Shown: positions 10,893-29,042 of the stretch, in pieces | Position numbering within the stretch: position 1 is the stretch's first letter | Layout: each line of letters starts with the position of its first letter | DNA from: Lepidodermella squamata | Taxonomy: Eukaryota > Animalia > Gastrotricha | DNA length: 64,000 bases | Direction: 5' to 3' | Assembly (NCBI GenBank): GCA_047495785.1 | Contig: JBLDXI010000017.1 | Span: forward strand, 62,001-126,000 | Program-made: the position numbers and the translations under genes | The notes under the pieces: generated by a model | Database searches by the model: none | What the model saw: only the letters and a program-made list of their open reading frames with translations | Told to the model about the DNA's origin: nothing

Positions 10893-13800
10893 ATGTTAAT
10901 TCTTTTAACATGCTGCGCAATGCTTGCGTTCGGAAGTGCGAAGCCTCTCAATCTTTCGCTACTTGTAACTGTCACAGAGACTGGAAACGAGCCGATTCAA
11001 GGCATTGGTTGTAAAGCTGGCATTCAGGTTGCCATCGATGAATTCAATAGACGATTAGATGTGCTGCCGATGTACACAATCATTCCCGACTTTCGGGACG
11101 AGTCTGACGGATCGCTTGAAGCCACAACAAGAACCCTAGAATTTCTAAGGGATGCCGAAAAAATCGGGCGGGTGATTTCGCCCATTACCATGGGTTCATG
11201 GTTTTCATCAGGATGCGGGCCGTTAGGAAAGGTGCTCAAGCATATCAATCTCGTTCAAGTAGCGTTCGGCTGTAATTCTGCCAGTTTCGCGTCCAAGAGA
11301 AGCGTCTACCCTAACACCTTCAGATCAGCCTCGACTGCCAACTTGCTCGCCTATCCTTACTTGAAGTTTGTAATTGAAGTCGGAAAATGGAGCCGGCTCG
11401 CTATCATTACTCTGGCAACGAATCCATTCGATCTCTCGATAGCTGTGCGCATCAAAGATGAAGCGGAGGCTAATGGGGTAGAGATTTCGCACTTCGATGT
11501 GACTAAGGACATTGAGGATTTCACGATTCTCAACTTGATTAACAGCGACCCGAGGGTGATTGATTTACAGATCTCCTCTCCTACACTAGTGATCAGATTC
11601 TTATGCCTGACGCATAAGTATGGCTTGACTGGATCGAGGTTCACGTTCCTACTTCTGTTTGAAGCATTTTTTGAACCCATCGAGCTGCCAACTGAAGTAA
11701 TGCCTGGTTGCACACGACGAGCGATTGAAATACAGCTGAGATTTGCGATTTGGTCGGGCTGGACGTCTGAAGACCTAAAATCTCCCGGGATGAAATCATC
11801 TGCCGGTTACAACCTGGCTGAATTCGAAGAACGCTACTTCAAACTCACGAATGGCTTGAAAACCGCAGATTACGGCCACCGATTAATTTGCCACGATGCT
11901 GCTCTCAATACTTTGCTCGCCCTTAATGAGACAGAAACCAGATTGAACGAACAAAATATGACCTTGAGTGATTATCCGTCCTATCCCAATATTGTGATGG
12001 AGATTGCCAATGCTTCTGTTCCAAACGCTCGATTCGATGGGCTGCGCTTGAGGAACTTCAGCTATGATCCTAAAACCCTTGAGATGGATAACGCAGAGGT
12101 TCAAATCATTGCTCGATGGACACCGGATAGTGGTCTTGTCAACCATTATCGGGATGTGGTTCTCCCAGGCGCAAATCCTTACTCATTGAAAGGACATTCT
12201 TTTGAGCTACTGAAACCTCTGAAATGGTTCACGAAAAGTGGTCAGCCGCCCAATGATAGGAGCGTGGTGATAGATGTTAAAGACAAAGTTCCTATCGCCC
12301 TCTTCTACTCTGTTGTGGTCATATCCTCAGCGTTGGATCTAGCTCTGTTCCTTATACCAGTAAAGTATCTTCAACGTACGAATTCGGAATATGCTGTTCA
12401 AAAGTTAGCTGCGGTCATGCTTGCCTCCGGTTTGTTTCTTCTGAATGGCGCAAGCATTGCTTGGATAACGGAAACATCGAAGACAATATGCTACGTAAGA
12501 ATAGTTCTGGTTGTTGCTGGATTCGCATTTCTTCAAAGCTTTGTGTTTGTCAGCATATATCGACTAAAATCAAGTAAGCTTACTTCAACCCGTTCTGGTT
12601 CCAGAGTTCGACAGGAATCTCGGATGACTCGCATTTCGAGCTTCAAGGAGAGTGAAAACGCCGCAAAATCTAGAGCTATAGTTCCTCGGGCAAGAGGTGT
12701 CAAATTCGTTACTGCTCTGAAATTGACATGTTTGCCCTTATTTACATCTGCAATTCTTGTGGTTGTATGGCTGAGCAGCGACTATTTCTTTATTATTAAC
12801 GTAATTAATCCAACTCCACTTGATAAAGATCAAATTCAAGACGTATACAGTGTGTCCGTCAAATAATATGAGCCTAAATATAGCATTTTAATTGCGCCTG
12901 TTCACGAGTCGTGCACGAGGCAAAAAAAACGCAGCACTGAATGATAGTACAGCTATTGTTGTTCATTGCTGGAATAATATCAATTATTGCTCCGCCAAAA
13001 TTTGTATTATTTAATCAAGATAAAGAACATTCTTCGGAACGAAAGCATTAGCTTCGGGATTTTCACCTGCGAGCTTTGTACATTACTAAAGTTTTGGGGA
13101 CAACGAGTTGCCCTGAATATTCATGCAATAAGATCAAACGCGCAACAATGTCAACCTAATATCTGGAAAAAATATAACTATTTAACTGCGATTTAATAGC
13201 AAATTTTCTGATCCAATTCAGTTAAAACTGTTTGTACTAGCTATTGGACGTATTCTTGCGGATATGTGAAATTCACGTATATAACGGTTAGCCGATAGCG
13301 CCCCGGATGCTACACAAATTGGCGAAAGCGACATTACCCCTTTATTTCAAAACGCGGAACTTATTTCAAACAGATTACCAGGTCGTAATGGAAACTGCTT
13401 TAGTTGCTTTCATTGCATTTGTTGCATTTGTTGCATTTTATGCTTCAACGGCAGTTATTAAATTAGACATGCAAGATTACGAAAAAAATTTAGAAAATGT
13501 CCCGCGGCTGTTGAAGACCCAAGTCGATGGGCAAGTCGATGTACGCGAAAAAGGGGAAACCCGATTCCAAAAAAGCGGTTTGTAAAACTGGCCATGGCCG
13601 AATTCAAAATGGCCCTTGCAAAACAAAAAACTGAAACGGCTGAGGGAGAAGATGATGATGACGGAGATGAACCTGATAGTTAAGATAATTTTTTAAAGGC
13701 GCGGCTCGTTAAGAGGAAAATATGAGCATTCATGATGGTCAGAACATCACCTTCTCTATCACCTGAAAGAATTAAGACGAAGAAAGTTTAACCATCAACA

Positions 13801-14295
13801 CTAGCCAATGCATACAAATTTTAACTAGCAGTAGTAAATAAAGCTTTAGATTTCATTGACGTATTATTTTTTGCATCTCATGAAAAAAATGAGACGCCAG
13901 ATCTGGCACGCGCCACGCTTGCTGTTGCTTTTGGACTATAAATAGCCTCATATTATTTGACGGACACACTGTATATTCGTTCTGTTTCTTTGGTCTGCGA
14001 GTCCACTGGTGGTAATGTCTGGGCTATGGCTTTTACTTTTTCTCATTTAACATTGTTTCTCGTCGAGTCTGTCTTGCTGTTCATGCTGAGCCATATTGCC
14101 CATTTAAAACGTGATATTAATATCAAGTTTTTAAAAATTTTGACATTGAATTGCATTATTGCGATATCAGTCACGCTCCTACTTTCTGCCGTATTTGTGA
14201 AGGTTATTGACAAAATGATAACTGTCTCCTTGATAACACTTGTTTTGACCATTAGTACCATAGCAATTCAATTGGCATGCTTTTGGCGTGATTGA
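10893..14295 (+). CDS. GABA-B-like class C GPCR, paralog 2, interrupted by a TIR transposon at 12848-13971 (pseudogene or splice-rescued)
   Basis: Removing the element and one TA rejoins ...QDVY|IRSVSLVC..., matching paralog 3 DVYMRSVSMVC; both halves are otherwise open. Confidence 0.88.
12848..13971. mobile_element. Non-autonomous Tc1/mariner-type DNA transposon, 1124 bp
   Basis: Perfect 25-bp TIRs CAGTGTGTCCGTCAAATAATATGAG / CTCATATTATTTGACGGACACACTG; TA duplication at 12846-47 and 13972-73; no transposase recognised inside. Confidence 0.93.
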
Positions 14296-14492
14296 GGGCC
14301 ATATTATTTTTTAAATCGATGTAACCCACTCGAATACCACGTCAAAAACGATCAATAAACACTTCGCATTCTTACTTCCTACTTCTTACTGTACAATTAG
14401 ATGCAGGGTAAACTTGGAGGTGTAATTTTGGGCACTTCGGCTCTGCAGGTGAATGGCTTTGTAACTCCGTGCGATAAAGCTCCACAGACATT

Positions 14493-14891
14493 TGAGTCCT
14501 TGACAACTCAGCCACGACAACTCAGCCATGACTTTTCAGCGTGCGACAACTCAGCCTTTTAAACATTTATTTTAATTTACGACATCTCAGGCTGCGTCAA
14601 CTCAGCCTTTTCCTAATTCTAATAATATCGCGACAACTCAGCCTTTAAACTACTTAGTCCGGCTCACATGCTCGATCCGCTCGCATGGTAATATGGCTAG
14701 GTATTTTCACAATTGAATAAAGGCTAAGTTGTCGTGGGCTGAGTTGTCGCGATATTATCAGAATTAGGAAAAGGCTGAGTTGTCGCAGCCTGAGATGTCG
14801 TAAATTAAAATAAATATTTAAAAGGTTAAAGGAGTTATCGCAGGCTGAAATGTCATGGCTGAGTTGTCGTTTCCTGAATTGTCGAGACTCA
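14493..14891. repeat. Foldback/MITE with ~150-bp inverted arms built of GACAACTCAGCC subrepeats
   Basis: Left arm repeats GACAACTCAGCC, right arm GGCTGAGTTGTC; central CATGCTCGATCCGCTCGCAT matches, inverted, the cores at ~51165 and ~62190. Confidence 0.85.
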
Positions 14892-16505
14892 GTTGACGGA
14901 ATACGGCGATAAAACCACAGATTTTGTTGCATAAATTCCCCGTCCCTTACGAATGGCGCAAGTGCCAAGGTGATTAGGGCAATATTTGATTTTTAAGAAA
15001 TGTTATAAGCAAGGCGACTTAAACGTCGATTTGAGACCCCATCTTATCTCCCAAATAAATAATCATTTCGGGACGAAAATTGGCAGGGATATCCTAAGAG
15101 CTCTACTATCTCGGATACCGAAAGAAAAAAGGAAGATCCAACGATTGGAGGGCATTCACATGAAGTTCAGGCGAATAGCGGGTAATTTCTGACAATATAA
15201 AGATGCGGTTGAGCGAACAATAACTATCTCCCATCGCCAAAATTCAGGTGAAATTCGTAAAATCACCCAATTCTTCTACCGATAAATCGGGGCTCATCTT
15301 ACAAACCTTCGTACTAAAAATCATCGAGTTTTGAATTATGTCTGATTTTCAATCCTTGAAAAACATCGTCTTGCCCACAATTACCCGCCTTGCGGTACGA
15401 AAACGAAACGACAAACTTTTTTATTTTGTCCTTCTCTTCATCAGAGCTGACAGCAATTAAATAGAAAAAAATACATATAAAAAAGGCCGTCGAAAGATAG
15501 GCTCCAGCAGTATGGCGTATCGCCCTTGTCCGGGACAGTGCGCCTGTAACGATAGAGAACGAGCACATAAAGTATATCTAACAAAGACATCTTGAATGTT
15601 TTCGGTTCAGTTATTTAATAAAGTTGAGTAAATTTATGCGAATAAATGTTGCCAATAAGACCAAGCTTATGGCGGGCCTACAACTTAGCCGAAAATGACA
15701 TACGTTGCTCAACATCCGTAAACATAGACTGTTGGTTTACAATTTCACAAGTTGCATGCCTGGTTGCATATAATTTGTCTTGTCTCCGTATTCAACGTTT
15801 CATGGAATATGCTATTTGCCCTGACGCTATAATTATTATAGCCGTTAGTACCGTACATAAGTTCGTACGATTCTGATAAAGATGCTCTGGCAAACAAAAG
15901 TTTCGTATTTGCAATTTATAGCAATGAGATTTGCAGAATCGCCCAGGTGAAAATGATTGCTATCTGAATTTCACACATAATTTCGCCATCAAATACTGCG
16001 AGACTTTTATTGAAACCAAGGTCCCTGTCACCTTTAGTCCAAATCGTTTTCCATTTTCCAAAATTTGCCAAATTATCTTTATCCCACTTTGAAAAATATA
16101 AACCCTTCCTTTTTGAGCTCGCAATATTAATTCTCAGTAAAATGTTCATAAAAAGCGTCCATCAAAAGAGGGCTTTCCGACCCATATCAAAAAACCTTTC
16201 TGGACAATTAGAATAGCCAGGGTATACATGCCTTTGCCAAATGTCTGAGAGTGAATGTAATTGGGGCACGTGACTTGCAGCAGCGTGGAATATTAGCCAT
16301 AAATTCAACCAGAGAGTCACGATGAGTGAGGGTGAGGACGGGGACTAAAGACATTATAATGACGCTAAGACTTAATTATCCAATCATCATTAACGGTTGA
16401 TACACCAAACAATGCAAATAAGCGAATTTTATATAGTGATCAACTGCTTATATTCCAAGAAAAATTGCTTCTCTTTTCATTTTGGATATATTTCATGCTA
16501 TAGCC

Positions 16506-18785
16506 ATGGAAATCACAGCTGCTCTCATATTTTGCGCATTACTTGAGTTCGGAAACTCAAAGCCATTCAACTTGTCGCTACTTGTAACTGTCACAGAGAC
16601 TGGAAACGAGCCGATTCAAGGCGTTGGATGTAAGGCCGGAATTCAGGTTGCCATCGACGAGTTCAATAGACGATTGGATGTGCTGCCGATGTACAATATC
16701 ATTCCCGACTTTCGGGACGAGTCTGACGGATCGCTTGAAGCCACAACAAGAACCCTAGAATACCTAAGGGATGCCGAACAATTTAGTACGATAATTTCGC
16801 CCATTACCATGGGTTCATGGTTTTCATCAGGATGCGGGCCGCTGGGAAAGGTGCTCAAGCATATCAATCTCGTTCAAGTAGCGTTCGGCTGTAATTCTGC
16901 AAGTTTCTCGACCAAGAGAAGCGTTTATCCTAACACTTACAGATCAGCATCGACTGCCAACTTGCTCGCCTATCCTTACTTGAAGTTCGTGATTGAAGTC
17001 GGGAAATGGAGCCGGCTCGCTATCATTACTCTAGCAACGAATCCATTTGATCTCTCGATAGCTATGCGCATCAAAGATGAAGCGGAGGCTAATGGAGTAG
17101 AGATTTCGCACTTTGATGTTACTAAGGACATTGAGGATTTCACGATTCTCAACTTGATTAACAGCGACCCGAGGGTGATTGATTTACAGATCTCCTCTCC
17201 TGCACTAGTCATCAAATTCTTATGCCTGACGCATAAGTATGGCTTGACTGGATCGAGATTCACGTTCCTACTTCTGTTTGAAGCATTTTTTGAGCCCATC
17301 GAGCTGCCAACTGAAGTAATGCCTGGTTGCACACGACGAGCGATTGAAATACAGCTGAGATTTGCGATTTGGTCGGGCTGGACGTCTGAAGACCTAAAAT
17401 CTCCCGGGATGAAATCTTCAGCCGGTTACAACCTGGCTGAATTTGAAGAGCGCTTCTTCAAACTCACGAATGGCGCAAAAACTGCTGACTACGGCCACCG
17501 GTTGATTTGCCACGATGCTGCACTGATTACGTTGTTCTCCCTCAATGAAACCGAAGCAAGACTCAACAAGCAAAATTTGACCTTGGGTAACTATTGGTCC
17601 CATCCCAAGAAAGTGATGGAGATTGCCAATGCGTCTGTATCTAAGGCTCGATTCGATGGGCTGCGCTTGAGGAACTTCAGCTATGATCCTAAAACCCTTG
17701 AGATGGATAACGCCGAGGTTCAAATCATTGCTCGATGGACTCCGGAGGCTGGTCTTGTCTACCACTATCGGGATGTGGTTCTACCAGGAGCGCGCCCCTA
17801 TTCATTGAAAGGGCATTCTTTTGAGCTACTGAAACCTCTGAAATGGTTCACAAAAAGTGGTCAGCAGCCCAATGATAGGAGCGTGGTGATAGATGCCGTT
17901 GAGAAAGTTCCTGTGGCCCTCTTCTACTCCGTAGTAGCCGTCACGGCTATACTCGATCTCGTTCTGCTCCGTGTATCAGTAAAGCTTTTTCGGCGTAGAA
18001 ATTTACTGCCTACATTTCAAAAACTAGATTCAGTCATGCTGGTTATCGGTTTGGTTATTCTGAATGGAGCGAGTGTGGCTTGGCTTGTAGAAACGTCTAA
18101 GGCACTGTGCTACCTGAGGATTATTCTACTTATTGTAGGGTTCGCGTTTCTCCAGAGCTTTATTCTAGCTAGCATATATCGACTAAAATTTCGAAACCAT
18201 CCCTCAAGCCCTATTGCTGGTGCTCGATGGGAAGCTCAGGTTACTCGCGTTTGGAGTATCCAGATAGATAAATACTCCGTAAAATCTGCGGATTCAGCTC
18301 CTGAGGCTCGATCTTCAAAATTCATAACTGCTCTGAAGTTGAAATCCTTACCTTTAATTGGTGCTGCATTTCTACTTATTGTTTGGTTAAGCATCGATGA
18401 TGTCTCTGCTAATATTGTCATTAATCAAACTCCACTTAGCTACGACCAATTTCACGACGTGTACATGCGATCTGTTTCTATGGTCTGTCAGTCCGCAGAT
18501 GGTTACGCCTGGGCTATGGCATTTACCTGTTTAAATTTAACACTGTGTCTCGTTGAGGCTGTCCTACTTTTCAAGTTGAGCCATATCGCCCCTTTGAAAG
18601 GCGATGCTAACTTGATATTTTCCAGAATTTTGACATTGAATTGCATCATGATGATATCAGCAGCACTCTTACTCTCTACTGTATTCCAAGCGATTATTGA
18701 AAAAATGATAGTCATCTCCCTGACGACACTCATGTTAACAATTAGTAACGTAGCAATTCATCTTGCATTATTCTGGCATTATTAA
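16506..18785 (+). CDS. GABA-B-like class C GPCR, paralog 3
   Basis: Intact ORF from ATG 16506; VFT nearly identical to paralog 2; 7TM ends at FWHY-stop. Confidence 0.9.
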   Translation: MEITAALIFCALLEFGNSKPFNLSLLVTVTETGNEPIQGVGCKAGIQVAIDEFNRRLDVLPMYNIIPDFRDESDGSLEATTRTLEYLRDAEQFSTIISPITMGSWFSSGCGPLGKVLKHINLVQVAFGCNSASFSTKRSVYPNTYRSASTANLLAYPYLKFVIEVGKWSRLAIITLATNPFDLSIAMRIKDEAEANGVEISHFDVTKDIEDFTILNLINSDPRVIDLQISSPALVIKFLCLTHKYGLTGSRFTFLLLFEAFFEPIELPTEVMPGCTRRAIEIQLRFAIWSGWTSEDLKSPGMKSSAGYNLAEFEERFFKLTNGAKTADYGHRLICHDAALITLFSLNETEARLNKQNLTLGNYWSHPKKVMEIANASVSKARFDGLRLRNFSYDPKTLEMDNAEVQIIARWTPEAGLVYHYRDVVLPGARPYSLKGHSFELLKPLKWFTKSGQQPNDRSVVIDAVEKVPVALFYSVVAVTAILDLVLLRVSVKLFRRRNLLPTFQKLDSVMLVIGLVILNGASVAWLVETSKALCYLRIILLIVGFAFLQSFILASIYRLKFRNHPSSPIAGARWEAQVTRVWSIQIDKYSVKSADSAPEARSSKFITALKLKSLPLIGAAFLLIVWLSIDDVSANIVINQTPLSYDQFHDVYMRSVSMVCQSADGYAWAMAFTCLNLTLCLVEAVLLFKLSHIAPLKGDANLIFSRILTLNCIMMISAALLLSTVFQAIIEKMIVISLTTLMLTISNVAIHLALFWHY

Positions 18786-18810
18786 GTGGCATATTTCAAT
18801 ATTCCATCGT

Positions 18811-19689
18811 TTACAATCCCGTCACAAGGCAGTCAATAAAAATTTCGCATTCGTTGAATTTCAAAAAGTTTTTCAGAGATTTCGGCAGAGTAAGAGCCTG
18901 AATTGCATTGCTTCTTTGCAGCAGACCAACAGGAAAGGTAGCCAAAATAGCCCGACGCGCGTTTAATTGCAAATTCGTAATCTGAAACCGTTCAACGCAG
19001 CTTCTCGCCTCGGCTGAAATCGATTCCATTAAAGCAGGGTTCACAACGCCGTGTTTGAAGCTGTTGAGTAACAGTGGAAAGAGAACGCGTTGGCAATTTG
19101 CGAAAATGATTGTTTCCGCAATCATGTCGAAGTCGTCAGCATCTACATCTTCCAGACGAGCTCCAGCTCTGATTAGGGGCAAAATAACGGCTTTGATTAA
19201 ATTGAGAGTGGATTTGATCGGCCGATTTTGAATGAGACGATTTGAGCATTTCAACCATGCAACTAGAAGTGGGCTCCCAGGTCCATGTGAAAAATAGTCA
19301 GCGTAAGGCCCTGCAGACTCAATAATAAATCGAACAGGTTGAGGGCCCAATTCTTCAGCGAGTTCCGTCAAATTATCTACAATCCAGTATTGGTAAGAAA
19401 TGTGACCATACTTATCCACAGGAGGGGCGTATAAATGTGTAATCGGTTCGAAACCATACATTCCACCCAAGAGACGAGACAAGCTTTTCAAGAAAGAGAA
19501 TGTCTCTTTCAGTAGGTCTAGTCTGTTGTCCTCATTAGCATGCCTCAGCTGCCAGGTCAACGTGAAAATTGCGAGAGAAATAGGATGACGACGGCTGCGT
19601 AAGTCGAAGTCGTAGCTTTCTGTTGGCAGATCATATTCGCGGGTTTTTGAACGCAGGCACCAGCATTTGAAGCTCTCAATAGCGGCCAT
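18811..19689 (-). CDS. SOCS-box protein 1 (ASB-like putative Elongin BC/Cullin-5 substrate receptor)
   Basis: C-terminal NLQLNARRAIL...LPKSLKNFLKF matches BC-box plus Cul5-box; degenerate ankyrin-like SPLLVAW...LIRAGA; first ATG 19689. Confidence 0.75.
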   Translation of the reverse strand: MAAIESFKCWCLRSKTREYDLPTESYDFDLRSRRHPISLAIFTLTWQLRHANEDNRLDLLKETFSFLKSLSRLLGGMYGFEPITHLYAPPVDKYGHISYQYWIVDNLTELAEELGPQPVRFIIESAGPYADYFSHGPGSPLLVAWLKCSNRLIQNRPIKSTLNLIKAVILPLIRAGARLEDVDADDFDMIAETIIFANCQRVLFPLLLNSFKHGVVNPALMESISAEARSCVERFQITNLQLNARRAILATFPVGLLQRSNAIQALTLPKSLKNFLKFNECEIFIDCLVTGL

Positions 19690-20478
19690 AATTTTTATGG
19701 ACGAAGTAAGAAATAGGTTACATTTTTTGTCAACTTTCACGCTCTCGCTATATCAACACGAGAATAGTTGCTGCTTACGTCAATGATTCTATTAAACATG
19801 CTTATATAAACTAAGAGGTGTGCTGCACACGCAAAATGAAAAAAGAAAAATTCACGAAAGGGTAGTGAACTTACAAAGCTATTAAAAATGAATAAAATAT
19901 TGCGCAATGGCGGCGTGGCATATAATTACGATCTTCGTGGATGATTTCAGTTTTATTTGTCCTTTTATTTGTCCTTTTTTTAGCACGCAGCTATCTAATC
20001 CTATCTAATCCCAAAGGAGAAGCTTCTTTTGGCTTCAAATCATGCGTATTGCTTTATCGTGGGATAATGCTGGAGTCACGACTTCCTTTACTTAATGACG
20101 TTAGCTTCCGGTGATATGCAGTTTTCGTGTTTCCGATGGCTGCGACTAAATGTCTTTGAGGTAAGAAGTGTTGCGTGTTCGCGCCTTCCGCATTAAATTT
20201 GTCGTGCTCGTCTGCAAACAGATTATGAATGTAAACACGCCCTTGAAGCCTGTATGTGGGATAGCTTGATTCAAGGTTGTCGCAGTCTGATATATACTAA
20301 GGTCGAAGAAACGCCACGAGAACATATTATAAGCCTGCAAAAATTTATAGAAACTCACGTTTAAGATACCCGATACATATAATTAGCCCCATCGATAACG
20401 GTACAGGTTGCGTACTTTTCACAACATCGTGCACCCCAAGTTCACGGATCCGTACATTTTAGAACATTATTTTTTCTG

Positions 20479-22785
20479 ATGTTCGTTGTTTTCATAATTG
20501 CTTCAATTTTGACTGTGACAAGTAGCCGTAAGCCTTACAACTTATCGCTACTGGTCACAGTAACTGAAACTGGGAATGAGCCTGTTGAAGGTGTCGGGTG
20601 TAAAGCTGGCATTCAGGTTGCCATCGATGCTTTCAACAAACGGTCAGATAAGCTGCCAAACTACAACATCGTGCCCGATTTCCGCGACGAATCTGACGGG
20701 TCAATCTTTGCAACTGTCCGAACTTTCGAATTCCTGAGGGAAACTGAACAAGATGGTCGGTCGATATCCCCTATCACGATTGGGTCGTGGTTTTCAACCG
20801 GCTGTGGGCCTCTCGGAAAAACCCTGAAGCATATCAACTTGGTCCAGGTTGCTCTGGGCTGTAACTCGGCTAATTTCGCATCGAAAAGGACAATGCATCC
20901 TAATACTTATCGTACAGGCTCAACTGCTAACTTGCTAGCCTATCCCTACGTTAAATTTATCATGGATGTTGGCAAATGGACGCGATTGGCTATCATAACT
21001 CAACTCACAAACGGTTTCGATGTCTCAATCGCCTTGAGGATAAAATACGAAGCTGATCGAAACGGCATTGAAATTCCTCATTTCGATGTTACAACAGACG
21101 TCGACGATTACACGGTGTATTACTTGATGCAAAATGACCCTAGGGTAATCGATCTTCAGATCTCTTTCCCGCCACTCGTCGTCAAGTTCTTATGCCTGAC
21201 TCACAAATACGGAATAACCGGGCCAAAATATACTTTCTTGCTACTTTTCGAGGTATTCTTCGAGCCGAAAGAAGTTCCTGAGGAAATAATGCCTGGGTGC
21301 ACTCGGAAAACTATCGAAACTCAACTACGTTACGTAATCTGGTGCGGATGGACTACTGAAGATCTGATCACCCCCGAAGCCCCAACTGCAGCGGGTTATG
21401 GGTTGAGCACCTTTGAAAAGCGGTACTTTGAACTGACAAAAGGCGTAATGGCTGCAGATTACGGTCGAAGATTGAACTGCCATGATGCAGCCTTGAATAC
21501 AATTCTGTCACTTCATGAAACCGAGGTTAAACTAAACAAGCTAAACATGACACTGAGTGACTACCGAAGTGACCCTGAGCGGGTAATGCTATTAGCAAAT
21601 CAATCCGTGGCGTCCCTTCAGTTTGACGGGCTACGTCTGAAGAACTTTAGTTATCATCCAAAAACCATGGAAATGGATAATTCAGAGGTCCAGGTTATCG
21701 CTAGATGGACGCAAGAAACAGGACTAGTTATCCACTACCGAGACTACGTGAAAGCCGGAGCCGATGCTTACAGCTTCGCGGGACACGTCTTTGAAGCTCT
21801 GAAACCACTAAAATGGTTCACAAAAAGCGGTAAACCTCCACAGGATCGAACTGTTACATTGGATGTTGTTGAGCAAGTTCCAGTTCAGCTATTCTATTCC
21901 ATTCTGGTTATAGCGATAATCATCACAGTTGTCCAACTAAGAATTCCTATCCGAGGATTCGCCATGTCTGACGCTAGCTATCCTCACAGGTTGGTTCTGA
22001 CCCTTTTGTTCACGGGTTTGGTTCTCCTCAATATTACAAGTGTTTCCCTCTTGAGCGAGACGACGAAAGCTATGTGTATTTTTCGTAACGTTGTCATGGT
22101 TATGGGGCTTGGTTTCCTACAGAGCTTCATGGTTGCAAGTTTATCGACGCTGAACTGCGTGAAGCAAATCAGGGGATCATCAGTCTCTTCTCGCCGCGCC
22201 TCTCACTCTCGATCATCGCATCCTACCCGCTTTACCAGTTTCACGGGCATCCAACCACAAGGGAAAAATTCATCGGTAGGTCCGACGGAAATCAGTCCCA
22301 TCGTATCCCCAATCGATAAAGCCACAGTGGCGATGAAATGGTTGATTTTCCCCATAGCCGTGTCTGTCGTTCTGCTGATTGCTTGGCATTCAAGTGAAAA
22401 ATACAAGGTTAATACAACAATCAATGCCCGACAAATTGTTTACGACGATTATGAAGATGTCTATTTGAGATCCGTGTCTATGGACTGCGATTCCACGGGT
22501 AACTTAGCTTGGATAGTTACGTTCGTTGTCGCTCATCTTATTGGCTACTTTATCGAAGCTCTGTGGATTTTTAAGCTGGCCCATGTCAATTCGTTGAAGA
22601 GCAACCCGTTCCTCAGGGTTTTACGTGTTATCAGCATCAATGGCATTATGCTAATCATTCTCGCATTTCTACTCTGCATTGTTTCCTTGTCGATTACTCA
22701 GAAAATGATAGCAGTTTCGATCATCACCCTTCTGCTCAGCGTTAGTAACAGCGCCGTTCATATGGCTAGTTTTTGGAAAAGATAA
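20479..22785 (+). CDS. GABA-B-like class C GPCR, paralog 4
   Basis: Intact 768-aa ORF colinear with paralogs 1-3; stalk KWFTKSGKPPQDR. Confidence 0.9.
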   Translation: MFVVFIIASILTVTSSRKPYNLSLLVTVTETGNEPVEGVGCKAGIQVAIDAFNKRSDKLPNYNIVPDFRDESDGSIFATVRTFEFLRETEQDGRSISPITIGSWFSTGCGPLGKTLKHINLVQVALGCNSANFASKRTMHPNTYRTGSTANLLAYPYVKFIMDVGKWTRLAIITQLTNGFDVSIALRIKYEADRNGIEIPHFDVTTDVDDYTVYYLMQNDPRVIDLQISFPPLVVKFLCLTHKYGITGPKYTFLLLFEVFFEPKEVPEEIMPGCTRKTIETQLRYVIWCGWTTEDLITPEAPTAAGYGLSTFEKRYFELTKGVMAADYGRRLNCHDAALNTILSLHETEVKLNKLNMTLSDYRSDPERVMLLANQSVASLQFDGLRLKNFSYHPKTMEMDNSEVQVIARWTQETGLVIHYRDYVKAGADAYSFAGHVFEALKPLKWFTKSGKPPQDRTVTLDVVEQVPVQLFYSILVIAIIITVVQLRIPIRGFAMSDASYPHRLVLTLLFTGLVLLNITSVSLLSETTKAMCIFRNVVMVMGLGFLQSFMVASLSTLNCVKQIRGSSVSSRRASHSRSSHPTRFTSFTGIQPQGKNSSVGPTEISPIVSPIDKATVAMKWLIFPIAVSVVLLIAWHSSEKYKVNTTINARQIVYDDYEDVYLRSVSMDCDSTGNLAWIVTFVVAHLIGYFIEALWIFKLAHVNSLKSNPFLRVLRVISINGIMLIILAFLLCIVSLSITQKMIAVSIITLLLSVSNSAVHMASFWKR

Positions 22786-23008
22786 CGATTGTATAGATTT
22801 GAGGTTCAATTTTTCATGTTCGTGATCTCAATTTGAGTAAACACTATGGGTCTATTTTTGGTCCATATTTCGCAAGAGGCGGCGGACAGAGTGGCTGCTT
22901 CCTTCCTCTTAAAACACACCCCTGCAAGTTCCGTGCTACATGGTACCAAAATAAGCAGATAGCTTTGTCTTTGTGAAATGACTCACATTTTTATTAGATC
23001 TCACAACG

Positions 23009-24229
23009 TTAGAGAAATTTCAGATAGCTCTCCAACACCCTCGGGAGTCCAAAACTATTGCAAGCAGAGTCTCGTGACTTCAACCCAAGAGGTAAATGTC
23101 GTAGAACAACACGACGCGCCATGGCTTGGAGGCTTGTCGCGTAAAAATGCCTCTTGTTCTTATAAAAATTAGGGGTATCACAACAGAAGCCATCGTTAGC
23201 AGACGCGCCATCGAGACATTCGTAGTAAACAGCTAGTAAATCGTAATTACCTGCAGCGCAACAGACCGACCGTATTTCCGATTCGAGCCGCTCGCCCATA
23301 GGGTTGTCCAGTCTACAGCCAGCTCTCAGCAGTGGGAGTATGACATTTAGTACAATTACATGACGTATTTCCCCACAGTACTCAAAAGCTTCCGGTTGTA
23401 AAAGGTGTCCAGAAAATAAGGACCTGACATGCCATGCGTACCAAGCTGCGCACAAGGGGCTAGTCATAGCTCCGGATGACTTGAGATAGGGTTGACAAGC
23501 CTCAATGAAAAACTCCACGGCTCTCCGGCCGATGAACAGAGCGAAAACCGGTAAATTATTCAAAATCCAAGGTTTACCAGGCCGAGGTCTGAAAAAAGTC
23601 GGGATGTAAGATTCCCGCTGAGTCGAAAGTAGCTTTCGAAGCAAGTTGTATTGGTCGCGTATCATAGCACCTTCAACCGGGGACAGATAAAGAGGCGGAT
23701 ATTCTGAAACACTCATGGCTGATATCAAGCTTTTGATTGGATGGCTCTCTACATCTCCGACTATTAAGCAATCCACTAAGGACAGACCGCATTGTTTGAT
23801 GATCAAGTTGAATCGTGCATGCAAGTTAGGAGAAGACCAATCAGCCAACGCATCATTGAGCAGACTAATCGTTACGCATAATGGTAGCCTTGCCTTGGCG
23901 TTAAAATTGCTGAAAATCGATGAAACAACGCTCCATACTTTGGATCGGGCTGAAATTGAGAGGATCGCGAAAAGCTCTTCGTTTGAAAGTGAGACGTATT
24001 CAGAGTCTGAGTCACAGATACGTGGTAGAAGAGTTTCTCGCAGTTTTTGGACCGAATTCAAATCAGCTGGAGAGGTGAAGCTGGTTGATGAGCTTATCAC
24101 TTGAGCCAGCTCGAATTTCAGGTCTTGAGTAACAGATTGTAGGAAAAGCGAAGCCGGACGCTTCAAAAACCCTGGTTGGGATAGCGGGCATGATTCACCG
24201 CAGATGAGACCACCATGGAATAGTGCCAT
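23009..24229 (-). CDS. SOCS-box protein 2, distant paralog of protein 1
   Basis: C-terminal SLQAMARRVVL...LPRVLESYLKFL; shares F-x-IE-x3-PY, SPL-x2-AW and VILPL-x-RAG-x-RL with protein 1. Confidence 0.78.
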   Translation of the reverse strand: MALFHGGLICGESCPLSQPGFLKRPASLFLQSVTQDLKFELAQVISSSTSFTSPADLNSVQKLRETLLPRICDSDSEYVSLSNEELFAILSISARSKVWSVVSSIFSNFNAKARLPLCVTISLLNDALADWSSPNLHARFNLIIKQCGLSLVDCLIVGDVESHPIKSLISAMSVSEYPPLYLSPVEGAMIRDQYNLLRKLLSTQRESYIPTFFRPRPGKPWILNNLPVFALFIGRRAVEFFIEACQPYLKSSGAMTSPLCAAWYAWHVRSLFSGHLLQPEAFEYCGEIRHVIVLNVILPLLRAGCRLDNPMGERLESEIRSVCCAAGNYDLLAVYYECLDGASANDGFCCDTPNFYKNKRHFYATSLQAMARRVVLRHLPLGLKSRDSACNSFGLPRVLESYLKFL

Positions 24230-26480: not shown

Positions 26481-27729
26481 ATGTTACTTTTCCCACTGCT
26501 CATCGGGTTAGCATCGGCGGAGCTCTTGAGCCATGAGGGATTCCCTCTCAGTCTGTCACGAGCACTTGAGCTGGAGTTTCTGGCTCATTGCCCTTTAGCA
26601 TTAGCAAAAGATTTGATCACCGAAATTTGGCTGAGAAATAATGATTTGCTGGATTTGCCTATTTCAATTGATGTCGAAGTGACCTTAACAAAAGTAGCAG
26701 CTATCAAGGACATTCGGCAAAGGTAACACTAGCATACCTTATCGCACGACGTGTTACCTGCATCACTTGATATTTTTTAGCTTGACGCTAATGCTTGGAC
26801 TCGAAATTGAATGGGAATATCCAGTCCGTGGATGTAGCAGCCTAAATAGCAGCAACCTTCTCAACCCAGGTGCAGCGCACGAACTTGATTTCCAGAGAAA
26901 CAAAACCAAGACATGGTTTCCTCAACTTCTCCACCTCAATGCAAAGCGAGACGTTGATTGGATAATAAATTCACCTAAAGTAGTCTACGTATTCCCCTCC
27001 TATGTTCCAGTTCTCGGGGCTTTATCGGCGTATTCTCGCGTCGAGACAGGGTGTGATATTTTCGATATCCTCAAATTTCCTTTCGACCATATCAGTTGCT
27101 CGCTAGTGATCGCGCTAAGTCGGCCTCTTGAAAATGAAATTTTCCGCAAAATCGTTTGCAAATCCGAGCAAGATTTCGTCATCGAAACTGAAATTTGGCA
27201 TCTGGTTGAAAATTGCAGCAATCCTTTCGTTTCTAATTATTCGAAAGCAGGCGTGACGTACTCCAAGTTTGAGATACGGGTATCGTTCGCAAGAAAATAT
27301 CACTTTTATGTGGGAAATATATTTCTCCCTATTTACGTAACAATCTGGCTGCAAATTTCAGCTCTCATAATGCCACCTTCGCGGCCAGATCGACCGGCGT
27401 TCTGCCTCACTGTTGCTGTTGCTTTCTCTCTCCTGCTATGGCAGGTCAATTCGATAATAACGCCAACATCGGAACCAATTTTCCTTAGAACTTCAATAGC
27501 AGCTAAATTGATACTCTCGGCTGTGCTCACGATTTATTGCCTCATCACAAATGCCTGGGCGAAGTCGAAGTCGGCGAATCGTCGTGTGCAAATAACCGAC
27601 AGCTTCTCTATTCGATACATTCGAGTCGCTGACTTCACAGCGGCGTTTTTATATGTATTTCCTCTCGTTGTTGTTGACTCTCTTTGCTTCTTTGGAATGT
27701 TTGGCTGGCGAGAGACTTTTTTTAAATAA
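26481..27729 (+). CDS. Cys-loop ligand-gated ion channel subunit 2 (divergent)
   Basis: Exons 26481-26722 and 26781-27729; signal peptide, WFP, CDIFDILKFPFDHISC, four TM helices. Confidence 0.88.
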
Positions 27730-27814: not shown

Positions 27815-29042
27815 ATGCTCCGAGTGTTATACTTTTTTATATTAGCGGCGGCTAAAGCCCTGTCTCTATCAGAACCGAAGAGTCTTTCAGAGGAGCTTTC
27901 AGACCATTTTTTCGCGGAGAAATGCCCACTCGGGACTGCAAAGCAGCTAATTCAAGAAATCTATCTGCGGAGAAATTCCACCGAGTTGCCAATCGTTGTG
28001 GATGTACGCTTTGATATACACCAGGTAACAGAGCTCGATGATATCAACTTACGGTAGGTTTCTTGTCACATACAAGTTAAGGAATCTCCTTTTCCTTAAC
28101 CTTGCGACCAGAATGACGTTCCTCTGTGACGTTGAATTGACGTGGAAGCTACCAAGAAGCGGCTGTGAGCCATTGGACCACGACCACAATACTCATCCGG
28201 CTATGCAATTCTCCGTCGAAAAAGAAAAAGTCTGGTATCCCATGTTATTCCACGAAAATTCACATGACAGCGTCACCTGGATAATGGATAACACTCGCGA
28301 TGTTTACTTCGAGGCATGCAGCGACCCTGTCATGGCTTCTGTTACAACTACATCCTTGGCACAAACCACTTGTGAACAAATAGACCTGCCAAAATTTCCG
28401 CTGGATCATCTCATTTGTTCAGTTGTCGTACAATCGTTGGATTACGCGAAGGACATTGACTTTGGGCAAGTAGCCTTCGAACTTGCATCGATGGATATTA
28501 TATCCAAATCGGATGTCTGGGAATTTCTGCCAAGTTTAGATAACACCACACTAGGAAACGGGAGTTATCCATATAAAGAGAAATATTATAATTATAGAAA
28601 AGTACGCTTCATAGCTAAATTTGGGCGCAAGTATCAATTCTACGTTGGTCACGTTTTTATCCCAATTTATACCATGATAGTACTTCAAGTCGCAGCATTG
28701 ATTATGCCGCCATCCCACCCGGATCGGCCGTCATTTTGCATGGGCGTGGTGATGGCATCATCGGTAAATCTATGGCTTGTTCACTCAGTGGTACCTCGAA
28801 GTTCAGAAAAACTCCACTTAGCATCCATGATCGAGGCTAAGATAGTGATTTCAGCATTGGTTACCATCTACTGCTTGATCGCCAATGTTCTCACGAGGTA
28901 TAAATTCTTTAAACAAGTAGTTACCATAGCTCGTTTTGTGAAAATTCGAAAAATAAGAATAATTGATTCAGTAGTTGGCTTTGTGGCTTTTCTATTATTG
29001 TTCACTGTTGATTTCGTCTGCTTCTGGCTCATCATGGCTTAG
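27815..29042 (+). CDS. Cys-loop ligand-gated ion channel subunit 3, tandem paralog of subunit 2
   Basis: Exons 27815-28053 and 28112-29042 (same intron position as subunit 2); WYP, CEQIDLPKFPLDHLIC, four TM helices. Confidence 0.88.

Follow-up and report, generated by a model that had tools for sequence, protein, structure and literature searches.

In the genome of Lepidodermella squamata, two genes for class C G protein-coupled receptors (GPCRs) are each followed by a gene for a SOCS-box protein, and this repeated pairing is most likely the result of passive co-duplication of a two-gene block within a birth-and-death receptor array. The locus studied, positions 16506-24229, lies in a 64,000-nucleotide stretch of contig JBLDXI010000017.1 (62,001-126,000 of the forward strand), which is referred to here as the window and from whose first letter all positions are counted. 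The gene order is GPCR3(+), SOCS1(-), GPCR4(+), SOCS2(-), as a preliminary description of the sequence had it, and all four genes are intact single open reading frames (ORFs) without spliced joins. Because 290-400 open codons are not expected by chance at the window's G+C content of 43%, these ORFs appear to be real, or recently real, genes. Both belong to kinds of protein already known, the SOCS proteins as new ASB-like SOCS-box adaptors and the receptors as new GABA-B-like class C receptors. The analyses below establish how the genes are ordered and related, to which families they belong, and that the duplication is old. The preliminary description had proposed a co-duplicated receptor with a dedicated adaptor that reads the receptor's second intracellular loop (ICL2), and had named passive co-duplication as a real alternative. 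The co-duplication itself is borne out by gene order, period and tree position, and a single duplication event is enough for the pattern, whereas the dedicated role of the adaptor found no support.

Origin of the receptor-SOCS pairs

GPCR3 (16506..18785, + strand; 759 amino acids from the first ATG at 16506, within an open frame that spans 16482-18785) lies tail-to-tail with SOCS1 (18811..19689, - strand; 292 amino acids from the first ATG at 19689, within an open frame that spans 18811-19740), and the two stop codons are 25 bp apart. GPCR4 (20479..22785, +; 768 amino acids) and SOCS2 (23009..24229, -; 406 amino acids) are alike in order and orientation, with 223 bp from stop to stop, and the arrangement recurs with a period of 3970 bp when measured between receptor starts and of 4198 bp when measured between SOCS stops. 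In a tree of the accessible relatives, SOCS1 and SOCS2 are sisters with support of 97/93, both on long branches. Synonymous sites have reached saturation for GPCR3/GPCR4 and for SOCS1/SOCS2 alike, with a proportion of synonymous differences (pS) of 0.77-0.84, so the duplication of the pair is old and both copies stayed open, which agrees with the earlier view of an old pairing with intact partners. One tandem duplication of a ~4-kb block would suffice for the whole pattern, and the two pairs would then count as one event.

We propose that a gene of the ASB-like family first became the tail-to-tail neighbour of a single receptor copy, that a single old tandem duplication of ~4 kb then gave rise to GPCR3-SOCS1 and GPCR4-SOCS2, and that a later duplication of the receptor without its neighbour, or the loss of a SOCS gene, would have produced GPCR1 and GPCR2. 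Two separate insertions or retro-copies of SOCS genes behind two receptors, with no co-duplication, would be a different route to the same order, and it is in favour of such an independent arrival that the distance between SOCS1 and SOCS2 (E 1.6e-14) is similar to that between SOCS1 and a metagenomic relative (E 1.6e-11). However, the two proteins group as sisters, albeit on long branches, their genes agree in strand and in their place behind a receptor, the SOCS period matches the receptor period, and no inverted or direct repeats were found flanking the SOCS genes. We therefore regard two independent arrivals as very improbable.

The array comprises four receptor copies, and a SOCS gene lies behind only two of them, GPCR3 and GPCR4. 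GPCR1 (7367..9751, +) is an intact ORF of 794 amino acids that matches ANF_receptor with E 2.4e-12 and is 55-58% identical to the other copies, and GPCR2 (10824..14295, +) consists of two ORFs, 10824-12866 and 13957-14295, that are split by an inserted element. Searches with tblastn and blastn for a SOCS relic in the 1072 bp behind GPCR1 (9752-10823) and in the ~2.2 kb behind GPCR2 (14296-16481) returned only noise (best E 0.12). GPCR2 and GPCR3 represent the youngest split in the array (78% amino acid identity), and their similarity reaches into the upstream DNA and is absent downstream; thus, the latest receptor duplication either did not carry a SOCS gene or did not keep it. The repeated tail-to-tail module of the preliminary description therefore stands for two pairs, but not for the array, in which only two of four receptors have a SOCS gene. 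Moreover, the boundary of the module, and with it the 'partner' of SOCS1, depends on how the row of genes is parsed, because SOCS1 is tail-to-tail with GPCR3 and also head-to-head with GPCR4, the latter two being divergent with start codons 789 bp apart.

Two mobile-element-like sequences were observed within the array. The element that splits GPCR2 (12844-13975) is 1.1 kb long, carries 40-nt terminal inverted repeats that are 93% complementary, and interrupts the protein between ...DKDQIQD and (V)YIRSVS.... A palindromic element resembling a miniature inverted-repeat transposable element lies at 14487-14898, in the spacer that separates GPCR2 from GPCR3; its inverted repeats are nested, with 89-nt arms that are 97% complementary, and it contains a 14-nt tandem unit, GACAACTCAGCCAC.

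Gene spacing at the locus

The first AATAAA 3' of GPCR3, as read directly from the sequence, is located at ~18836 and thus within the coding region of SOCS1; together with the 25-bp gap between the stop codons, this means that the 3' untranslated regions of GPCR3 and SOCS1 overlap if both genes are transcribed. Overlapping 3' ends of GPCR3 and SOCS1, a bidirectional promoter between SOCS1 and GPCR4, or shared chromatin could bring about co-expression or antisense effects without any physical partnership, with the SOCS proteins acting on targets elsewhere. The short stop-to-stop gaps of both pairs, the position of the AATAAA and the divergent SOCS1 and GPCR4 starts are consistent with such co-regulation. 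However, gaps of less than 100 bp also separate unrelated neighbours in the window (3772/3863 tail-to-tail and 5185/5263 head-to-head), so tight gene spacing is taken as the norm of this genome. Furthermore, no conserved non-coding block common to the two intergenic regions was found. Co-regulation as the reason for the pairing is, on this evidence, unlikely. Scans with Rfam and for tandem repeats yielded nothing relevant.

Family assignment of SOCS1 and SOCS2

SOCS1 and SOCS2 are true paralogues, with 28% identity over 187 amino acids (E 3e-16), and have in common the blocks WI(V/L)(D/N)NL, IE(S/A)..PY, SPL..AW and VILPL(I/L)RAG.RL in addition to a C-terminal box. The earlier picture of two highly diverged proteins that share motifs and a BC-box is thereby confirmed. 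The Cul5-box of that picture is best called Cul5-like, as both proteins, and the whole SOCS1/SOCS2 family, lack the first Pro of LPxP. Pfam SOCS_box was matched at the extreme C-terminus of both proteins, at 19.9 bits in SOCS1 (E 8.5e-4) and 19.4 bits in SOCS2 (E 1.3e-3), both below the gathering score of 23.5. The box of SOCS1 (18856..18978, -) consists of the BC box (T)NLQLNARRAIL followed by the Cul5-like box LTLPKSLKNFLKF, and that of SOCS2 (23015..23137, -) of the BC box TSLQAMARRVVL followed by the Cul5-like box FGLPRVLESYLKF. BC boxes follow the consensus (S/T/P)LxxxCxxx(V/I/L), in which C is often S or A. NLQLNARRAI of SOCS1 and SLQAMARRVV of SOCS2, each located 30-40 residues before the C-terminus, agree with this consensus in their Leu, Ala and Ile/Val, and the Cul5-like boxes (LTLPKSLKNFL in SOCS1, FGLPRVLESYL in SOCS2) retain the second Pro as well as the final L..(F/Y)L, a pattern from which Cul5 and Cul2 are indistinguishable.

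An exhaustive HMMER search with the two-sequence SOCS profile among 1.84 billion representative proteins identified 15 with E<=1e-3 (best 1.4e-11), and a word search with SOCS2 in a sequence collection that does not include this genome gave no match. In the ten relatives that were scanned with Pfam, SOCS_box was present throughout, at 32-40 bits in eight and below the gathering score of 23.5 in P0002 (21.4) and P0006 (20.7), and ankyrin repeats were matched in two (P0004 and P0008). The matches of the relatives extend 120-200 residues upstream of the SOCS box; thus, the family relationship is not confined to the box. An alignment of 17 sequences displayed an N-terminal C-x-G-x-x-C-P, the ankyrin-like turns LL..GA.P and ILPLLR.G.R, and an extended box of the ASB type. 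The C-x-G-x-x-C-P occupies residues 9-15 of SOCS2 (24185-24205, -) and is degenerate in SOCS1, whose N-terminus is shortened relative to its family. A corresponding motif, (H)..L.C.G.CP, was observed within the first 15-25 residues of P0001, P0002, P0005, P0010, P0013 and P0014, in a region without Pfam coverage.

The profile built from the 17 sequences matched Ankyrin-1 (4e-14), designed ankyrin proteins, ASB8 (1.5e-7, via the box) and ASB9 (1.8e-6, via the repeats). Several narrower comparisons were negative: no Pfam ankyrin repeat was matched in SOCS1 or SOCS2 themselves, the two-sequence SOCS profile had no match in the PDB, and in hhalign it did not match the window's own ankyrin protein (probability 0.2). 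Modelled by AlphaFold with the alignment, SOCS2 is all-helical with a predicted local distance difference test score (pLDDT) of 66 and a predicted template modelling score of 0.61, compared to a pLDDT of 38 for the single-sequence model. Foldseek matched this model in the PDB only to generic helical repeats (E >= 0.07). In a fold search of 48,161 chains, ASB9-Elongin B/C ranked first (Z 8.8 over 240 residues, root-mean-square deviation 5.1) and ASB8 ninth (Z 7.8); Z values of this size are common for helical repeats, and the fold match therefore does no more than agree with what the sequences indicate. In a language-model search, the Atlas cluster nearest to SOCS2 was ASB17 (0.96). Together, the profile, language-model and fold evidence indicates that SOCS1 and SOCS2 are very divergent members of the ankyrin/SOCS-box (ASB-like) family, and on the same three lines of evidence we have given up the earlier label of an 'orphan' SOCS adaptor. 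The two proteins would then be substrate-choosing subunits that mark their targets with ubiquitin, with the BC box and the Cul5-like box docking on Elongin B/C and on a cullin that is probably Cul5.

The receptors: a conserved flytrap and a variable membrane half

GPCR3 and GPCR4 are 54% identical over 760 amino acids. ANF_receptor was matched in all four receptor copies at 35.8-47 bits (GPCR3 35.8, GPCR4 36.1), above the Pfam cut-off of 25.4, whereas 7tm_3 gave a match on GPCR3 only, which at 23.6 bits was below its threshold of 33.5. A profile of the four receptor sequences matched chains of GABA-B receptor 1 in the PDB with E 2e-10, and the alignment spans the flytrap domain up to profile position 564, reaching the membrane domain. 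Hydropathy analysis revealed seven hydrophobic segments, and the proteins stop 4-6 residues past the seventh transmembrane segment (the tail of GPCR4 being 6 residues long), so that a C-terminal coiled-coil tail of the GABA-B type is absent. The preliminary description was thus correct in calling these receptors tailless. Word searches with GPCR4 and with the receptor alignment in the sequence collection lacking this genome found no relative, an exact look-up of GPCR4 returned no record, and a scan of metagenomic contigs with the receptor alignment gave 573 pattern matches and no relative. These receptors are, as judged from their sequences, probably lineage-specific, GABA-B-like class C GPCRs.

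The two halves of the receptors have diverged to very different extents. In a region-wise comparison, for which alone the pieces of GPCR2 were joined with an X at the break, flytrap identity was 67-72% among the old copies and 90% between GPCR2 and GPCR3, whereas the seven-transmembrane (7TM) half was only 31-42% identical among the old copies. ICL2, of ~55-60 amino acids, was the most variable part with 12-29% identity, the lowest value of any receptor region, as the earlier note of a variable ICL2 had anticipated. It lies between the third and fourth transmembrane segments of GPCR3 at 18177..18347 (+), where it is the most variable segment, and at 22144..22341 (+) in GPCR4, where it is Ser-rich and unalignable with the ICL2 of GPCR3. 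Synonymous divergence (dS) among GPCR1, GPCR3 and GPCR4 has reached saturation in the flytrap and the 7TM half alike (pS 0.71-0.84). Conservation of the flytrap thus appears to reflect purifying selection rather than recent copying, and recent gene conversion as the cause was rejected for these old pairs on the same ground. For GPCR2 and GPCR3, a dS of 0.26 in the flytrap compared to 0.68 in the 7TM part is suggestive of some gene conversion between these two copies. That the conserved half is the ligand-binding one is unusual for a presumed chemoreceptor family. The receptors would bind their ligand via the strongly conserved flytrap, while the membrane and intracellular halves may differ between copies in coupling or regulation.

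Linkage at the loci of relatives

The neighbourhoods of eight SOCS relatives were surveyed at eleven loci, totalling 104 kb, in metagenomic assemblies of compact, intron-poor eukaryotes. No gene with ANF_receptor or 7tm_3 and no tblastn match with the four receptors was found at these eleven loci, a result that, the relatives being distant, is weak evidence. Their neighbours were instead other SOCS-box genes and genes for RasGEF, an ABC transporter, haspin kinase, aldo-keto reductase, FGGY kinases, P450s, topoisomerase I and Tom22. The preliminary description had named unlinked family members elsewhere as grounds for refuting its proposal; within the scope surveyed, members of the two families do stand apart, since GPCR1 and GPCR2 have no SOCS gene and no class C GPCR lies at the eleven loci.

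On one metagenomic contig of a compact eukaryote (L011:4698-15668), seven SOCS-box genes lie in a row on one strand, so expansion of SOCS-box genes is not confined to the genome of the window. With assumed numbers, chosen for illustration, of 150 SOCS-box genes and 75 receptors among 20,000 genes, about one adjacency is expected by chance. An adjacency by chance would thus, on these assumed numbers, not be surprising with families so large.

Functional coupling of receptor and SOCS protein

Each SOCS protein could be dedicated to the adjoining GPCR as its Elongin BC-cullin substrate receptor, reading its ICL2 and driving its ubiquitination and down-regulation, with the pair held together by selection. 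Several observations weigh on this side and against passive co-duplication. The pair is repeated and old and its four ORFs are intact, which means that both SOCS copies have long stayed open beside a receptor. The receptors lack the C-tail that usually bears down-regulation signals, and their ICL2 is long and fast-evolving. Furthermore, the SOCS body evolves fast, like the cytoplasmic side of the receptors: identity between the SOCS proteins (28%) is nearer to that of the intracellular and membrane half of the receptors (18-42%) than to that of the flytrap (67-72%), as co-evolving partners would show. Finally, action of Elongin BC-type ligases on receptors has precedent, as the pVHL-Elongin BC ligase is reported to act on the beta2-adrenergic receptor (PMC12452932) and ASB3 on TNF-R2 (PMC4812663).

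Nevertheless, the argument for cognate pairs rests on a single duplication event, no adaptor gene accompanies two of the array's four receptors, one of which is intact, and no GPCR stands beside the detectable SOCS relatives at the loci surveyed. In addition, 'cognate' is undefined when SOCS1 adjoins GPCR4 head-to-head just as it adjoins GPCR3 tail-to-tail. We consider a dedicated adaptor for each receptor quite unlikely, and the stronger form of this idea, a hard-wired and co-evolving cassette of receptor and E3 adaptor that reads a hypervariable ICL2 and replaces tail-based desensitisation, very unlikely. Functional coupling of receptor and SOCS protein is thus unsupported by the sequence. 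With passive co-duplication as the preferred explanation, the adjacency is inherited from one juxtaposition and is not evidence for the receptor as a target.

A functional pairing, if true, would represent the first GPCR/cullin-adaptor cassette with genomic linkage and would offer a way to learn how class C receptors without a tail are turned off. In its own right, the locus documents an ASB-like family that is very divergent and for which public data offer hardly any detectable relatives, and a receptor family in which a conserved ligand-binding half is joined to a diverging signalling half. It also calls for caution, since in a compact genome one tandem duplication can yield an apparently repeated 'module'.

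Other genes in the window

Just upstream of the receptor array, two intact genes with a MACPF/perforin domain, at 3863-5185(-) and 5263-6642(+), lie head-to-head and 78 bp apart. Short ORFs resembling Cys-loop receptors (Neur_chan_LBD) were observed on both sides of the array, at 2615-3772, 26767-27729 and 28038-29042 (+).

Comparison with known systems

The KCTD family, treated in PMC5664961 and PMC4431850, consists of BTB proteins that for the most part work with Cul3 ligases. KCTD8, KCTD12 and KCTD16 are auxiliary subunits of GABA-B receptors. They bind the C-tail of GABA-B2; KCTD12 is not known to bind Cul3, and the genes of these KCTDs are not known to lie beside receptor genes. As proteins of a cullin-adaptor family that accompany a GABA-B-type receptor, they are the nearest described analogue of the cognate-adaptor idea, but they need the C-tail that the receptors of the window lack, they are BTB rather than SOCS-box proteins, and in the window the putative association is one of gene adjacency. 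The pVHL/beta2-adrenergic receptor and ASB3/TNF-R2 systems resemble the proposal in that BC-box substrate receptors ubiquitinate membrane receptors. They differ in the receptor classes concerned and in that gene linkage does not enter into them, and the GPCR of the window is at most a putative substrate.

Compared to GABA-B receptors themselves, the receptors of the window differ in that they have no C-tail and hence no heterodimer coiled-coil, in their long and variable ICL2, and in being intronless and arranged in a tandem array. Like GABA-B receptors, however, they join the flytrap directly to the 7TM domain, without a cysteine-rich domain. Among the ASB proteins, ASB9, ASB8 and ASB17 are substrate receptors of Elongin B/C-Cul5-Rbx2 ligases. 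SOCS1 and SOCS2 differ from them in the lack of a Pfam ankyrin match and of the first Pro of LPxP, and their family carries the N-terminal C-x-G-x-x-C-P that is common to the metagenomic relatives. They are nevertheless like ASB proteins in their C-terminal box, of the type ..SLQ..CRR.IL..LP.G...R..AI..L.LP..L..YL.F, and the family appears to share with ASB proteins a helical-repeat body with the ankyrin-like turns LL..GA.P and ILPLLR.G.R.

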